Positions 1 to 7,534 of a DNA stretch of 64,000 bases are shown piece after piece. Below the pieces are notes generated by a model. That model was not told the DNA's origin, searched no databases, and saw only the letters and a list, made by a program, of their open reading frames with translations. This stretch comes from Diplonema japonicum. Taxonomy: Eukaryota; Protista; Euglenozoa: Diplonemea. A program made the position numbers and the translations under genes. The DNA lies in assembly GCA_964019335.1 (NCBI GenBank), contig OZ025657.1, forward strand, positions 62,001-126,000, given 5' to 3'. How positions within the stretch are numbered: the stretch's first letter is position 1; each line of letters starts with the position of its first letter.

Positions 1-2772
1 CTCCACCATCCTGCCCTCTGTACGCTTCAGGCGGTACTTTAGGTGCAGTGGGAGGCGTGCGTCTTCGAGCACTTCTGATTTCAGCACTGGGTGCCCGCAG
101 ATATATTGCAAAAGGTACTCAACAAGGGGGTGGTTAGGGGTGTCCTTCCTCCACAGCCTGCAGCTATTGTCTTTAGATATGGTGAGGACGACGCTCCCGT
201 CGAAGCTGTAGCTGGAAATGACAACGCCCTTGTGCCCTGACAGCACCTGCAGGCATTCTCCTGTGGAGACCTTCCACCTTCGGCATGTCATGTCGGCAGA
301 ACCGGTGAGGAGCTCCTGGCCACCAGCTCCAAACGACACACAGCATATGCCGGCATGGTGCCCCTTCATCATTGAGATGCAGCCCGCAGAAAGCGTGTCC
401 CACACACGCGCACTCATGTCCTCCGATGCCGATGCCACCAGCCATCCATCTGCGGAAAACTCACAATCAGATACATCTTTAGAGTGCCCCTTGAGTGCCT
501 TACACCTCTTCGTGTTTGTGTCCCACAATCTGCACGTTGTGTCCGATGAGCAGCTCAACACCAGGTTGCCATGCACATTGAACTTCACAGCCGCCACCTC
601 ACCCCCGTGTCCTTCGAAGAGCGCTAGACACTCGCCCGTCAGTGAGTGCCACAATCGAACAGTTTCGTCTGCAGAACCGCTTGCAAGGAGGTCATTAGCG
701 GGAGAGAAGTCAACGCACACGATCTCAGCGCTGTGCCCGTGCAACATCGTTATCTGGCTGCCTGTGAGCGCATTCCATATGATCACAGTCTGGTCCATAG
801 ATCCAGAGGCAACTAGTGTTGACCCTTGGTTGACCGCCACACACACCACCTCGAGGTCATGCCCCACCAGGGTGTGGACGCACTCCCCTGTTCCTGCGTC
901 CCATAGTTTACACGTCTTGTCGAAAGACGCAGTCACAAGGCGGTCACAAAAAGGCGTGTTCCATATAACATCATACACGTAGCCCTCATGACCTCGGAGC
1001 GTATTAAGCAGCTCGCCACTGTTCCCGTCCCATACCTTTGCCGTCAAGTCGTACGAGCCTGTGGCCAGTTTGCACCCCGTGTTGTTGAGTGCACCGCTCG
1101 TAAGGCGAGCTGCTCGTGATAAGCCACCAACTGTGGGCTTTATAACCCTGTGGAGGTGATAGCCATTCGTATTGCCAGGAGCAGGTTTCATGATCAAAGG
1201 TTGAATGGAGTTGATCTGGAGACATGAGTTTTCAAGGTACCTGTCGACAAGGGACTTGTGTCTCTCTTCGGGAGTGACAGGGTCCGAGCGGGTAGTAAAG
1301 TTAGGGATACCAGACGGAGAACAAGGAGTGAGTGGTCGAGCGGTGGTGCGCACGATTGATGCGGCAACAATGGGGTTGAGACATCGCTTGTCACTCGCAA
1401 AATGCATTCCATCGAAGTGCTGACTAGTCAGCTTCTTCTCGCTAACTTCGCCTTCCTCATCGGCTTCCTCTTCTTCGTCGCCTACTGCATCTGTCTGCGT
1501 CTGTGCCTCCTCCTGCTGCGCCTGACCTGCGTACTGGGATGGCGGCGCGATATTAGCGTAGTAGATGTTCGCCTGCAGATCCTGGATCGCCTTTTCCAAG
1601 TCTTCCTGCGGGTTGACGGGCGGCTGCTGCTCTTTCAGCACACCAGGCGTTGAAGTCGTCATGAAGGACCAGTACATCCCGTTGTTGCTGTCAGGTTCGG
1701 GTGCGGTGTGAGGAGGAAGAGGAGAAGGAGGTGCTGGATGGAGGAGGCAGTCCGGGCCACCAACTGCCGTCATGTAGTTCAGCTTTCCAGGGAACTTAAA
1801 CGGGGTATCTATCTCTATGTTCTTAGGTTCGTAAGCATCGACAAGATCGAACAACGCAGCAACGTCATCAGTGACGGTTTTCAGCAAGTGGTGTGAAGAT
1901 GAGGAGGGTGTGGCATAACCGAAGACAACCCTGTTGTGTGCAGCGTCTTTGGAGATGCAGACTGTGCTTGTGCCTTCTTGCACATATGTTTTGAGGACAG
2001 GCTGGTCAGAGGGGAACTCTTGAGTTGGCGACGGCTGCTGGTGTTCTGCTTCGTCGCTGAGGAGCCACTCTTCGTCGTAAGGCTGGTTGTGCACAACAAG
2101 GTGCCCTTTGAACCCCGTGGGAGAGGCCGACAGGATGTTGTCATCAGACGACAACGGACGGTCGCTGCGTCGCCACATTCCCACCAAGGCCGCATCTTCT
2201 TTCGGAAGATCGTCGACAGCACTTACTAACTGCTCTGTTGACTCCATCTTCACGATTGGGATTGTGTGCTCAACGTTCCGCATCATTTCTATGACCTGCG
2301 ACCACTTCTCTTTCTCTCCCGCTCTTAGCTGTGCCATTTTCCTCTCACCATGCGCTGCAATTCTGCTCGCATAGTATTGGCTTGTCATCGTCCCTTCGAC
2401 GTTGATGTGCACCAGAGTCGGGTGGCTTGCAATAAGATCAAGCAGGTCTTTTCCACCCTTCCGGGTTATCAACCTGTTCTGGCCTACATTTAACACGTGC
2501 AACGAGTCACTTCTAAGACATCCAGCACACAGCACAGGACACGCTGCGTTGCTGACACCATTGTTCCTCAAGTCCAGAACTGCTAAATCTTTCATCACAT
2601 GAAGGGTCCTCCCCAATGCCACCACGCCAGCATCGCCAATATACGTATTCTTCAGCGAAAGGATATGCATTTCGTCCCCTTGCAGTGCTTCTAATAGCAT
2701 TGCATTAGGCTTCCGCCCTTCTTGTGCCACGCGGTGTAGGTACAGTCGTTGTGCTTCAGATAAGCACGCCAT
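1..2772 (-). CDS. LRR + IFT46-like segment + ODA16/DAW1-like WD40 propeller protein; 3' end runs off the window
   Basis: Absent from the ORF track because there is no stop before the window edge. Manual translation from ATG 2772 is open: MACLSEAQ..., RI-like LRRs ([25 protein letters not shown]), [50 protein letters not shown], then ~8 WD40 repeats ([53 protein letters not shown]). A pyrimidine tract and AG lie just upstream of the ATG. Confidence 0.85.
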
Positions 2773-2883
2773 GTATCCTGAGGGGACTGAAGAGGAAAAT
2801 GATCAAGTGAGGGATTGAAGAGGAAAATGAACTAGAAGCTTAGAAATCAGTGACTTATAAAAGACATAGATGAGATATTTAAA

Positions 2884-5800
2884 TCAGGACAGCATACCAA
2901 GTAATTTCTTCAGTTTGTCAGCATCCCAATTGTTTTTTGAGACAGCAACTTGTTTTAGGGTCCTTCCCTGCCATGGGCCGTAGCTGACCTTTTCTACAAA
3001 GGATAACCTTACCAGTGTCCAAGAGGTGTTCTCAAGGCCATTCTGCAGTGCGTAGTGAAACGGAGTGGCTTCGTTTGAATCTTTCGAGTCAAGATTGCCC
3101 TCGGCTAAGTCCTCGATGATATCTTGATGGTCGTCTTCAAAAGAGCAGTTCATACACACCACATGCAGCGCTGTTCTTTTGTCGTTGCTGGTTGCGTGTG
3201 TCTTGGCGCCCACTCGCAGCAGCTTACGTATGGCAGCTACGTTCCCTACTGCTGCTGCGCTGTGTAAAGGCGTTGCCCCCTCGTCATCTCTGCTGTTCAC
3301 GTTGGACAAGGTTACAAACACCTCGACAAGATCGCCTTCACACAGCTCTTTGTGCTTTACAAGTTCGTGCAAGGCCACGCTGCCAACGGGGAACTGCGGG
3401 ATTGGTTTGTCGCTGCTCTTTAGTAGTAGGGTCAACATCAGAGCTGTCTTCGTGCAGCCCGCGACGATGGCGACATGCAGCGGGACATACCCTTCAGCAT
3501 TGGTCACCAGAGACATGCGCAATGCTGCTTGCTTCGAGTCACTCGAACCGAATATCGTTGTCTCCGTTTTGAAGTGGTCATCCCACGCGGGGATGCCTGC
3601 CATCAGATGAAGGGGGGTATCGGGGCTCGCTTTAATCACGGCTTCAAGTAGACGCTCGTTCTTGGACATCACAACCGCTGTCAGGTTGCAAGCATCAACC
3701 TGAACCCGGTGCACCACAACATGGAAGGGCGTCATGGGGGTGTCGTTGACCATGCACACCGCAGCATGGTGTTCATCAGGGATTGATAGTACTTGGTCTG
3801 AGGTCTTCGCGTGTAGCAACGCCACGTGCCATGGAGTCCCGTCGGGACTGAGCGAAGGCTCGAGAAAGGTGCACAGGTGGTTGAGCATTGAGATGTTCTG
3901 CATCTGTGCAGCAGTGTGCAGCGGAGTGTAACCATTTGCGTCTTCTATGAGAGCAACTTCATTGTTGAATATCTTCTCATAAGCATTTGGCACAACGACG
4001 CCATACCCTGCAATGAGGTGCGCTAAGCTACGCATGGACGCATCTCTGCAGTCATGAAGCTCGTGGTTGAGGATGTCACATTGGTGTAGTTGCAGCGCAC
4101 AGCACGCAGACTCGTTTAACTTGTGATCCGACACGGAGTCTGTTTCCACGTTGTACTCATAGATCAACAAGAGGGCTTGTGCTACGTCACTTGGAAAGGT
4201 ACTCAGCTGGAGTGGATCAAGGTACACCCGCACCATTGCGCACACGACCCTGTACTTAAAGGTATGGCCTTGCCTGGAAAGAATTGAAGTCATCTCTCGA
4301 GCGACTCGTGGGTTATGCTCCTGCAGTCCCATTGGAACAGCATCACGTTTAATGAAGGCGACGGTGGCATAGAAAGCACTGATATCCCACGTTTCGAAAT
4401 CGAAGAGGAATGCTCCATCAGCCAACCGGTAGCCAATGAGTCCCATCAGTGTAGAACATAAAGGCAGAATGGTTAGGACTTCGCTAAGGCCACTTTTGTT
4501 AATACTGATGTTCTCCCTTTTGGTCAAAGACTCTGCCACGAGAACAACAATCTTCTTCAGTGCCTCCATGGCACCGTTGCACGTTCTCACCTTCCTGAAT
4601 AACTCTCGCAAGAAGTACGATTTCCTTTCATATCTGCCAAAGCCTGTATATACACGCTTGAGGTTTGTCCTGAGCGTTTTAGCATTACCGCTACGAGCTG
4701 CCTGAACCAAGATGTGTCCTTCAGCGAAGCAGCAAGCAGCTGTTAATAACATAGAGTGAGTCCTCTCACTGTCCTGCATGATGCCACTTCTGAACGATGC
4801 CTCGTACAATATAAAGGCTTCCAGTAGCCAATCTGAGTAGATCTCCTTCCTCGCTATGTCAAGGTGGTCCCTAAAAGCTGCCTGCTGCATGGACTCAATG
4901 AATAGTGCCCGGGAATACTCCAAGCGCGCACTGTATTCTTGATGCATGAAGTCGAGACGGACTAGTTCAGAGTGGCGGAGTGCTTCCTGCTGAATCGCTG
5001 ACAACAAAGCGACGGCAAAAGGAGCTACGAAAGCGGACCAAGCTGAGAAGAATTCGTGTTCCACGGACACTCGTACAAGAGTTTCTTCATGCTGCACCAA
5101 GGGTGCAAGGCCTGCAGTGAAGTGCACATCATATACAAGTAGCATGAGATAGGACGACTCTGCTTGTTCTTCGACTGCAACGACGCTTCTCGAGGCATAG
5201 TGGCTGCACACTAGATAACTAGCAGCTGTCAGGTATTCCATGGCATGCCGCTCCATATTGTCCAGCCTAGTGCGCTCCTGTAGCTCCACCCAGCACAGCA
5301 ACTCACAGCGCTGTGCCCATTCCTCTCCCATCAATATTTGCCTTACGTTCTCCTCAGCCACTCTTATCAAGGATGTTGACTCGCTTTCCTCGATCACAAG
5401 GATCCTGCCACCAGCCTCTTTCAACATGATATGCAGCACGCAGTGTTCATATAGTTGCTGCGCTTCAAGCTCCTCACCCTTCTTCTGACAGAGCACCTGA
5501 AGCACACTGCAACGACGCATTGTAAGAATGCGAATGCCGTCGTGATCATGATCGTGAGCAATGCCAACTCTGGAACACGCTTCTTCCAACTGCAGTCGTG
5601 CAAAAACCTCTTCAAGCCGAAGAAGCCGGTGCTCCACTAGGTATTCTTTATGGAGGAAGAGATATCTGAAGAAGCAAGAGCAATCCCACTCGATGACTTT
5701 CTTCTTGCTTTCTGATTCTAAAGATAAGCAAAGGTATTTGCAGCGTACAAAATGATTTCCACGGTCTGCCGCTTCTTGCCGCAGACAGATGTTCCTCTTG

Positions 5801-7098
5801 ACGTCCTCTCCCGCTACGAGAGCAGCCATGTGCACTTGTGCTCGATACCAGTGCTCTGTCATGAGCAGTTGAGTTTGCATTAGTTGCTTGACAGCCCACC
5901 CGCACTCCAGCTGCACGTACCGCCTCTCTCTGTGCACGCGCACCTCAAACACGATCCTTTTGTGAACTAACTTGATTTCTCTCGGCTGGCTTCCGTCCTC
6001 CAAAGCCCTCCTGTGCTGCTTCTCCTCGTACTGTATCTTCGACACTGTCACAGACCCTTCGAACCGCTCTCTGAATGTTTCGAAGCATTCCCGTTCGATG
6101 GCTGCTCTAGCAGGCATTTCCTTATACATGATACCGGCTATCCCTTCACTGCTTAGAATTAATAAATAGCTGTTGTCTTCCTCTTGTTCTATGCTGCATT
6201 TACATGCTGTGTGCCCACTCTCGAGAAACTCCTTGAGCAAGGATACCCATGCCTTACCTTCTTTTTTGAAAACACGTTTGAGCCTTCTTTTAGTTGTGGC
6301 GATGACGTCGTACTGCCTTTGGATGATGCCCTCAGGTGGCGGCATGGGACGTGAGGCGAGGGGCGGCGATGGGGTGGGCATGCCGCACGATGCAACACGC
6401 TTCGCGTGCTTCAAGGGGACACCTAAGGAAAGTGCCGAAGAGCAGCTGAGCGCAGGGGGCGACGGTGCATGTACCACTGCAGGGACAGGGGACCGGGACC
6501 CACACCGCTGCTGCGTCGTCATGGGACGTTGTGGAGCAGTGGTGACTGCGACTGTAGCAGTGGGGTCGGACCACGCAGGGACAGTTTGCGGCATGAAAGA
6601 ACCGCCTTGAATGGAGCACATGATACGTCCGTGAAGAGATGTGGAGCTGACGTCCACACGTGAGGAAGTGATGACCCACTCATTGAGGGATGGGGCGTGA
6701 TACAACCAACGTGTGCTTTCAAAGCGGCCGTAGCGACGCCAGATAGCCGTTGCCGGGAACAGCAGGCTGTAGGTCCCCGAACACCCACAGGTGGTAATGA
6801 CACTTAGACTGCGCGGGAGCTCGTGTTCTAGGTTCAAGACCTTGGAGGCACCGCCCCATTTCAGTTGCAACGGGAGTCTATACCTATGTCGCTCGCTCAC
6901 CGCCACCACCTTATTTCTTTTGTCCATCACCACCCACTTCCCACCTTTTGACAGCATCACTCTGTCAGCACTCTCCCAGTACGGCAAGCCTTCATTCCCA
7001 ACTCCCGCCACAGCATACCCTCCCACCACCCTCTTGTTGGTGCTCGACACCCACACCTTCTTTGGGACATCGATCACCTCAATCACATTCCCCTTCAT
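2884..7098 (-). CDS. Large protein with N-terminal Trp-rich modules, central helical/coiled-coil repeats and C-terminal ankyrin repeats
   Basis: 1423-aa ORF. Ankyrin motifs GYTPLHTAA, GATPLHSAAAVGN, RTALHVVC, ATPFHYAL. Likely start MKGNVIEV at 7098, just after an AG. Confidence 0.85.
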   Translation of the reverse strand: MKGNVIEVIDVPKKVWVSSTNKRVVGGYAVAGVGNEGLPYWESADRVMLSKGGKWVVMDKRNKVVAVSERHRYRLPLQLKWGGASKVLNLEHELPRSLSVITTCGCSGTYSLLFPATAIWRRYGRFESTRWLYHAPSLNEWVITSSRVDVSSTSLHGRIMCSIQGGSFMPQTVPAWSDPTATVAVTTAPQRPMTTQQRCGSRSPVPAVVHAPSPPALSCSSALSLGVPLKHAKRVASCGMPTPSPPLASRPMPPPEGIIQRQYDVIATTKRRLKRVFKKEGKAWVSLLKEFLESGHTACKCSIEQEEDNSYLLILSSEGIAGIMYKEMPARAAIERECFETFRERFEGSVTVSKIQYEEKQHRRALEDGSQPREIKLVHKRIVFEVRVHRERRYVQLECGWAVKQLMQTQLLMTEHWYRAQVHMAALVAGEDVKRNICLRQEAADRGNHFVRCKYLCLSLESESKKKVIEWDCSCFFRYLFLHKEYLVEHRLLRLEEVFARLQLEEACSRVGIAHDHDHDGIRILTMRRCSVLQVLCQKKGEELEAQQLYEHCVLHIMLKEAGGRILVIEESESTSLIRVAEENVRQILMGEEWAQRCELLCWVELQERTRLDNMERHAMEYLTAASYLVCSHYASRSVVAVEEQAESSYLMLLVYDVHFTAGLAPLVQHEETLVRVSVEHEFFSAWSAFVAPFAVALLSAIQQEALRHSELVRLDFMHQEYSARLEYSRALFIESMQQAAFRDHLDIARKEIYSDWLLEAFILYEASFRSGIMQDSERTHSMLLTAACCFAEGHILVQAARSGNAKTLRTNLKRVYTGFGRYERKSYFLRELFRKVRTCNGAMEALKKIVVLVAESLTKRENISINKSGLSEVLTILPLCSTLMGLIGYRLADGAFLFDFETWDISAFYATVAFIKRDAVPMGLQEHNPRVAREMTSILSRQGHTFKYRVVCAMVRVYLDPLQLSTFPSDVAQALLLIYEYNVETDSVSDHKLNESACCALQLHQCDILNHELHDCRDASMRSLAHLIAGYGVVVPNAYEKIFNNEVALIEDANGYTPLHTAAQMQNISMLNHLCTFLEPSLSPDGTPWHVALLHAKTSDQVLSIPDEHHAAVCMVNDTPMTPFHVVVHRVQVDACNLTAVVMSKNERLLEAVIKASPDTPLHLMAGIPAWDDHFKTETTIFGSSDSKQAALRMSLVTNAEGYVPLHVAIVAGCTKTALMLTLLLKSSDKPIPQFPVGSVALHELVKHKELCEGDLVEVFVTLSNVNSRDDEGATPLHSAAAVGNVAAIRKLLRVGAKTHATSNDKRTALHVVCMNCSFEDDHQDIIEDLAEGNLDSKDSNEATPFHYALQNGLENTSWTLVRLSFVEKVSYGPWQGRTLKQVAVSKNNWDADKLKKLLGMLS

Positions 7099-7534
7099 CC
7101 TGAATGAGGGAATGAAACAGCAACTGAAGTTACAACGACAATGAAAAGCTGACAAGTAAATGGGGAAGGTGGGTATGGAGATTTGAGGGAAAAAATGGGG
7201 GATAAAAAAGGAAAATGAAGGGGATCAGGGATGGCGTTGCCGGGAAAAGGCTTTTGAAATATTGAAAGGGACTCAAGATCGAGGTTTCTTTTCCCTGCTT
7301 TCTTTTGAACACTGGGGGAGGGGGTTGAGGATAATTTTCGGAGACACTGCCTTTCAACATTTCTTTTGTTCTTAATATGCGTAGATTTTGATTAGTGGGG
7401 AATAAAGGGGGTACAAAACAGGCTGCCCGTTTAGAACACTCTTGATGCAGGTCCTTAGGGAAATGAAGAGGTAGCTTAATTCTTCTCCTTTTTTTTCTTC
7501 TTTTTTTTCTTCTTCTTTTTTTCTTTCTTGTTTT

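Follow-up and report, generated by a model that had tools for sequence, protein, structure and literature searches.

Leucine-rich repeats, an IFT46-like arm and a DAW1-like propeller in one euglenozoan protein

A 64,000-nucleotide (nt) stretch of the Diplonema japonicum genome (contig OZ025657.1, positions 62,001 to 126,000; G000:C10:62001-126000), hereafter the window, begins on its minus strand with a gene for a protein in which leucine-rich repeats (LRRs), an arm resembling the N-terminal part of the intraflagellar transport (IFT) protein IFT46, and a WD40 propeller of the ODA16/DAW1 type follow one another. The frame read from window position 2772 down to 1 contained 924 codons without a stop (amino acids (aa) 1-924; 1..2772, minus strand). 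The flanking DNA added the last 20 codons and the stop (G000:C10:61938-62000, 1-63 nt before the window start, minus strand), giving a single-exon open reading frame (ORF) of 944 aa (L001:1438-4272, minus strand). A first-pass annotation, made from the letters alone, had pointed to an uninterrupted minus-strand frame missed by the ORF track, and this was confirmed; the frame was absent from the ORF list because it runs off the window edge. The ORF reading agreed with the closest relative, a 932-aa transcriptome-derived protein of Diplonema ambulator, which was 73% identical and colinear over 99% of the length.

An AlphaFold2 model of the full protein was built on an 18-sequence alignment of the family. 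The model divided the chain into a confident LRR domain (aa 1-166; 72-94 in pLDDT, the predicted value of the local distance difference test) with alternating strands and helices, a stretch of about 370 residues of low confidence, mostly disordered and with no folded domain (aa 168-535), a confident propeller (aa 538-880) whose 32 strands make up eight blades, and three helices within aa 883-923. The LRR domain (2275..2772, minus strand) is of the ribonuclease inhibitor (RI) type with capping helices; it has about four repeats of ~28 residues, and the alternation of strand and helix was confident over aa 30-130 of the model. Searches of PDB sequences returned RI-like and axonemal LRR proteins with E-values of 6e-7 to 1e-5, and a profile of five family fragments, in all of which the propeller is naturally missing, reached 6e-12, while Pfam LRR_6 gave E=0.12 in the window protein and 6.4e-6 in another family member. 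The LRR subtype is that of axonemal RI-type proteins such as RSP15, DRC5/TCTE1, LRRC34 and the LRR proteins in entries 9y6s and 9e5c, but only about four repeats are present here, and the likeness is one of subtype. Both the N-terminal LRRs and the acidic linker (aa ~430-450) named in the first-pass annotation were found.

The 16-letter peptide that had been quoted as IFT46-like was located at aa 226-241 (2050..2097, minus strand), where it aligned to VVQNQPHDEEVNLSE of Chlamydomonas IFT46 (CrIFT46). It contains NQPYDEE, a candidate ODA16-binding motif in which N229-Q-P-Y-D233-E234-E235 aligns with N29-Q-P-H-D33-E34-E35 of CrIFT46. By its letters (N229-x-x-x-D233-E234), it fits the published Nxxx(D/E)E motif of non-mammalian IFT46, as the earlier claim of an ODA16-binding motif in the middle region would have it. 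Isothermal titration calorimetry and mutagenesis showed in 2025 that residues 23-44 of CrIFT46 bind ODA16 with a dissociation constant of 1 uM (PMC11879689). The motif, 29-Nxxx(D/E)E-34, occupies a cleft of basic character that has ODA16's N-terminal domain on one side and its propeller on the other, and IFT46 binding requires both domains; the substitution D33K in CrIFT46 abolishes the binding, and the cleft of human ODA16 still binds the Chlamydomonas motif (PMC11879689). In the family of the window protein, the pattern is N-x-x-[YHF]-D-E-x-[WFYVI], located ~65-170 aa (mostly 75-115) upstream of the second IFT46-like element described below. No euglenid, kinetoplastid or environmental member lacked it; of the seven diplonemid members, four kept it, and D. 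papillatum, Flectonema and P0009 did not.

The second element, an IFT46-homology block at aa 299-355 (1708..1878, minus strand), consists of a conserved stretch followed by PxPPSPLPP; outside the propeller, no other segment of the family is as strongly conserved. It is recognized by PF12317 and by alignment with IFT46, has invariant columns in the family alignment, and includes the TVTDD...AVGGPD peptide of the first-pass annotation, which was found at its given place (aa 299-341, window 1750-1878). When aa 201-391 were compared with PDB sequences, the sole match was Chlamydomonas IFT46 (8bd7_D, E=1.2e-4, its residues 24-164). The five-sequence family profile detected the same chain with E=1.4e-7 over IFT46 residues 23-161, and IFT46 was its only PDB match that was neither an LRR nor a WD40 protein. 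The Pfam family PF12317 was detected in the window protein at profile positions 11-56 of 211 with 19.3-20.7 bits, below the cut-off of 22.2 (E=1e-3 with aa 1-560 as query and 3.8e-4 with aa 215-480), and in all five family fragments (best E=1.1e-5); across the family members its coverage was limited to profile positions ~2-56 of 211. The significant profile matches upheld the idea that the middle region is IFT46-like, and the Chlamydomonas strings quoted in the first-pass annotation, VVQNQPHDEEVNLSE and VGEDVRELFSYIGRYKPQTVELDTRIK..YIPAVGGID, agreed essentially with the 8bd7_D alignment.

The shared part is the N-terminal arm, in which the motif and the block LFxxIxxYxPxxIElxTxxKxxxPxYIPAVGxxD occur in the same order and at similar spacing. 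The conserved block that precedes the core of IFT46 (Cr ~108-160) was present. In contrast, the C-terminal domain of IFT46 (Cr ~165-319), to which most of the 211-position Pfam profile belongs and through which IFT46 heterodimerises with IFT52-C and touches IFT81/74 (PMC9753473), was not found in the fusion protein, where the arm is set between the LRR domain and the propeller. By these alignments, the IFT46 homology is real but partial, comprising the N-terminal arm only. In Chlamydomonas, residues 106-344 of IFT46 are enough for IFT-B stability, and only ODA16 and outer-arm import depend on the N-terminus (PMC5576905). IFT56 has been suggested as the partner for residues neighbouring the IFT46 block (PMC9753473). 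A search of the ESM Atlas with the middle region gave scores of at most 0.86 and beta-trefoil noise only, and aa 215-480, used as a single-sequence query, retrieved no canonical IFT46 under E=0.001 from 1.84 billion representatives. Two of the 15 matches, P0042 (ENA, 1821 aa) and P0046 (Rhipicephalus appendiculatus), were rejected as homologues; they are translated tandem DNA repeats, the E-values of which became significant through summed weak repeat matches to the disordered arm.

The eight-bladed WD40 propeller (aa 538-880; 133..1161, minus strand) was assigned as an ODA16/DAW1 paralogue by phmmer, Foldseek and phylogeny. Pfam recognized eight WD40 stretches in the window protein, which together with the 32 modelled strands agrees with the approximately eight repeats counted at first sight. 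Among PDB sequences, phmmer matched ODA16 (5mzh) with 1e-93 and human DAW1 (5nnz) with 1.8e-91; the next natural eukaryotic WD40 proteins, Rsa4 (1e-56) and WDR5 (~1e-49), were ~35-40 orders weaker, and the sole higher score belonged to a 14-repeat cyanobacterial protein, the score of which was summed over three domains. The top Foldseek matches were again 5mzh (7e-42) and 5nnz_A (template modelling score 0.97, root-mean-square deviation 1.3 A, 43% identity). In a maximum-likelihood tree, the fusion propellers formed one clade supported by 99 in the Shimodaira-Hasegawa-like approximate likelihood ratio test (SH-aLRT) and sister to canonical DAW1, and the joint branch of the two (SH-aLRT 93) stood apart from the other WD40 families of the genome and from bacterial WD40 proteins. 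Sequence, fold and tree thus agreed that the propeller is DAW1/ODA16-like and not of another WD40 family; its eight blades are of the DAW1 type, and its place is outside the canonical DAW1 clade.

The fusion protein shares the eight-bladed propeller with ODA16/DAW1 (5mzh and 5nnz) at 40-43% identity but differs at both ends. Canonical ODA16/DAW1 has an 80-residue N-terminal domain that the fusion protein lacks, and the fusion protein has in addition a 60-residue helical tail and ~540 extra N-terminal residues. Its propeller aligned to 5mzh and 5nnz only from their residue ~93-96 on, and no ODA16 N-terminal domain was found in it, as the PDB search with aa 1-560 gave no DAW1 match and the model upstream of aa 538 was of low confidence. 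Given the separate clade and the missing N-terminal domain, the propeller is therefore that of a DAW1 paralogue, not of an ODA16 orthologue. As judged from sequence, one chain combines homologues of two known binding partners, and this part of the earlier proposal of a Rosetta-stone IFT46/ODA16 fusion was retained. The proposal did not hold in so far as the protein belongs to a separate, old euglenozoan paralogue family, carries only the arm of IFT46 and a propeller without the N-terminal domain, and coexists with a canonical ODA16 in the genome.

The canonical DAW1 clade of the tree held two genes of D. japonicum. A canonical ODA16/DAW1 gene on contig 18 (G000:C18:~713800-714970; L008:800-2064, minus strand) is split by at least two introns, and each exon was searched and put into the tree on its own. 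The N-terminal domain (LLRYYPPG...) is encoded in exon 1 (194 aa), which matched DAW1 residues 1-189 with E=1.6e-117. The genome therefore has spliceosomal introns, whereas the fusion gene has none. A second copy of the canonical type on contig 6 (G000:C6:~574980-576210; L014:2490-3706, minus strand) grouped with the contig-18 gene; its coding pieces are split by A-rich or poly-K-coding stretches with frame changes and stops, which may be A-rich introns or the marks of a decaying duplicate. Of the two separate canonical genes looked for, that of ODA16 was found and that of IFT46 was not. In the 62.5-Mb assembly, canonical IFT46 was not found by a six-frame PF12317 search, by a family-profile search, or by two degenerate DNA patterns modelled on conserved motifs of IFT46, in part on those of the Chlamydomonas alignment. 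IFT81, IFT38/Cluap1 and IFT54/MIP-T3 (two loci) were readily found in the assembly; IFT57 (PF10498) was likewise missed in it, and the IFT46 negative is therefore not conclusive. Rather than being lost, IFT46 and IFT57 may have been missed because the assembly is incomplete there, because introns split the genes heavily, or because the genes have diverged. Trypanosoma brucei has a canonical IFT46 with the motif (PMC11879689), and the fusion family is therefore no general replacement of IFT46 in kinetoplastids.

The colinear arrangement of LRR, arm and propeller was not restricted to Diplonema. It was detected in the diplonemids D. papillatum, Hemistasia, Namystynia and Flectonema, in the euglenid Entosiphon, in the prokinetoplastid Papus and in several environmental contigs, and Cryptobia borreli yielded a fragment of the arm. 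Seven of the eight named taxa, from D. ambulator to Cryptobia, were represented by transcriptome-derived sequences, and most of the named homologues were complete ORFs in transcriptome assemblies. The fusion, which the first-pass annotation had proposed to look for in related genomes, was thus found in diplonemids, kinetoplastids and a euglenid. Since the architecture occurs in three classes and several of the sequences are transcriptome-derived, it is an old euglenozoan gene and not an artefact; the window gene is a genuine protein-coding gene conserved across Euglenozoa. The transcriptome ORFs of the relatives provide the best evidence that all parts would lie on one mRNA, and they argue against a splitting of the frame by spliced-leader (SL) trans-splicing. 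No trypanosomatid member was named in the protein search with P0044 and the cluster look-ups, a search that was not exhaustive. Literature searches retrieved no description of such a protein, and by its domain composition it is a new architecture built from known parts and conserved across a phylum.

As for the function, we tentatively consider the fusion protein to be an accessory scaffold or adaptor in axonemal-dynein/IFT cargo transport that binds canonical ODA16 in trans, with a probability of about 0.45. Such a protein would help to transport axonemal dynein arms or to pre-assemble them, and its IFT46-like arm would engage the same partners as the arm of IFT46. The acidic motif would be seated in the basic cleft of canonical ODA16, in trans, while the conserved block would take on whichever partner this block has in IFT46, possibly IFT56; the propeller, the LRR domain and the tail would hold a cargo or a regulator, for example an Arl3-type GTPase in the case of the propeller and the LRR domain. 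Because the cleft needs both the N-terminal domain and the propeller of ODA16 and the fusion propeller comes without that domain, an ODA16 in trans is the likelier target. Such a partner is at hand in the contig-18 gene, which has the N-terminal domain, and IFT is present (IFT81, IFT38 and IFT54). Some points weigh against this role. The motif is absent in three diplonemid members (D. papillatum, Flectonema and P0009), so that not all members can depend on ODA16 binding. As a partner of the IFT46 block, IFT56 is no more than a suggestion (PMC9753473). In favour of binding in trans rather than in cis, AlphaFold2 left the motif undocked (pLDDT ~30), although this is weak evidence, as the alignment behind the model was shallow (18 sequences). 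The first-pass annotation had suggested that NQPYDEE docks on the DAW1-like propeller of its own chain, which would make the protein a self-contained or auto-inhibited adaptor, closed until a signal arrives. A motif and a DAW1-type propeller indeed stand in one chain, ~300 residues apart on a flexible linker, and the binding of the Chlamydomonas motif by human ODA16 indicates that the cleft is widely conserved. However, the protein lacks the N-terminal domain that makes up half of the cleft in ODA16 and without which IFT46 is not bound, the motif remained disordered in the model, and the three diplonemid members without the motif kept the block, two of them (P0003 and P0058) together with the propeller. 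Docking in cis was thus not borne out and appears unlikely.

It is similarly doubtful that the protein is a decoy or competitor that sequesters canonical ODA16, or the partner of the block, from IFT trains and so acts as a negative regulator or cytoplasmic holding factor. The partner-binding arm of IFT46 without its IFT-B-anchoring domain (PF12317 ~2-56 of 211) is what such a protein would have, the contacts with IFT52, IFT81 and IFT74 mapping to IFT46 residues 165-319, outside the retained arm; a pure decoy, however, would need no conserved LRR domain, propeller and tail. There is a modest chance that the function has nothing to do with IFT or dynein arms, the arm and the propeller being evolutionary leftovers turned to other partners. 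WD40 and LRR domains are generic interaction modules and the motif was lost in some members, but the two IFT46 elements are collinear at similar spacing across three euglenozoan classes, the block is conserved more than any other segment outside the propeller, and DAW1 has been reported only from organisms with motile cilia (PMC11373600). In a more speculative scenario, which we regard as a long shot, canonical IFT46 would be missing or unrecognisable in Diplonema and the fusion family would be the main carrier of the ODA16-docking arm, so that outer-arm dyneins would be loaded independently of the IFT-B core, by way of an LRR-anchored DAW1-like scaffold; if true, Euglenozoa would have a rewired cargo-loading route of their own. 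That the frame is spurious, produced by two adjacent genes or by a join in the assembly, is hardly credible. In one sequencing run, a contig with foreign ends breaks off within the gene, at L001:3081, whereas the 944 codons are uninterrupted, the DNA contigs of two other runs crossed the locus without differences, and full-length colinear proteins were present in independent transcriptomes of at least five species.

The link between IFT46, ODA16 and the outer dynein arm is the best understood case of cargo loading onto IFT trains, and a whole phylum was found to keep a second protein with a copied IFT46 docking arm, including the motif mapped in 2025, and a second ODA16-type propeller. If the fusion protein does act in dynein-arm traffic, it would show IFT to have an adaptor layer open to duplication and recombination, and the protein would be a natural tool for asking what the IFT46 block binds and whether a DAW1 propeller can work without the N-terminal domain. 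No new interaction was revealed here, the IFT46-ODA16 pair being already known; the novelty lies in the architecture and in how widely it is spread among taxa. Diplonemids count as one of the most abundant groups of marine protists, and since they include a genetically tractable model, Paradiplonema papillatum, the hypothesis is testable.

Several further segments of the chain are specific to the family. The disordered linker contains a basic, serine-bearing motif, W-[RK]-[RK]-S-x-R-P-L-S-S (aa 199-209; 2146..2178, minus strand), identified by alignment and motif scan, in which R205, P206 and L207 are invariant in the family alignment. In the form W-[RK]-[RK]-S-x-R-P-[LM]-[SA]-[ST], it occurred in diplonemid members only and was absent in the kinetoplastid and euglenid members; to judge by its residues, it looks like a site of the basophilic-kinase type. 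Invariant columns also marked the segment MYWSF...NPxDN...helix...ANIAPP (aa 366-413; 1534..1677, minus strand), with W368, S369, F370, N387, P388 and A406-P411 invariant and a weak helix at aa 392-406 in the AlphaFold2 model; it matched no Pfam family. Ahead of the propeller, the alignment and the model indicated the element DGxxxxSDxRC (aa 455-465) and a helix ending in YLxxxxLQIN (aa 501-521; 1210..1410 for both, minus strand). This pre-propeller segment sits where canonical ODA16 has its N-terminal domain, and there is no similarity between the two.

The propeller is followed by a three-helix tail (aa 881-944), defined by the AlphaFold2 model and by its conservation across the family. The window holds its start, aa 881-924 (...LPLHLKYRL; 1..132, minus strand). 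The helices span aa 883-893, 895-903 and 909-923, with pLDDT values of 66-79 when the whole protein was modelled; in the tail model, they reached 91. The strings P-L-x-x-x-L-x-x-x-I and L-P-x-H-L-K-x-R-L, in our impression, loosely recall BC and Cul5 boxes, and a BC/SOCS-box resemblance had been raised in the first reading. WSB1-like proteins, which combine WD40 repeats with a SOCS box, likewise have a short three-helix tail after the propeller, but no SOCS match was obtained here. The 80-aa tail gave no Pfam family at E<=10, its PDB-sequence matches included no SOCS protein, and Foldseek with the tail model returned nothing at E<=0.001 and no SOCS box. The identification of the tail as a SOCS or BC box was rejected after these tests.

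The sequencing-run contigs at the locus appeared to be DNA, and runs other than X6 spanned it smoothly. In run X6, a 1942-nt contig (L001:1140-3081; window -360 to 1581) had ~3.7x the depth of the flanking contigs and covered the 3' 60% of the fusion gene together with its 3' flank. The ends of this contig were foreign: a run of T follows 3081, and the 21 letters that precede 1140 are unrelated. The sample may hold an additional, incomplete copy, or its library may have given rise to an artefact.

Upstream of the fusion gene, a 110-nt intergenic spacer (2773..2883, minus strand) separates its ATG from the stop of a gene on the same strand. The spacer contains a direct repeat, two copies of the pyrimidine-rich 22-mer cattttcctcttca[a/g]tccctca, and AG dinucleotides lie just 5' of the ATG. 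With its polypyrimidine tract and AG, the spacer fits a candidate SL trans-splice acceptor region and may be used as such. The upstream gene, a 1423-aa ORF (window 2884-7155, minus strand), ends 110 nt before the fusion ATG, and this tight same-strand spacing is consistent with polycistronic gene arrays. By eye, the C-terminal third of the 1423-aa ORF resembled ankyrin-type repeats.

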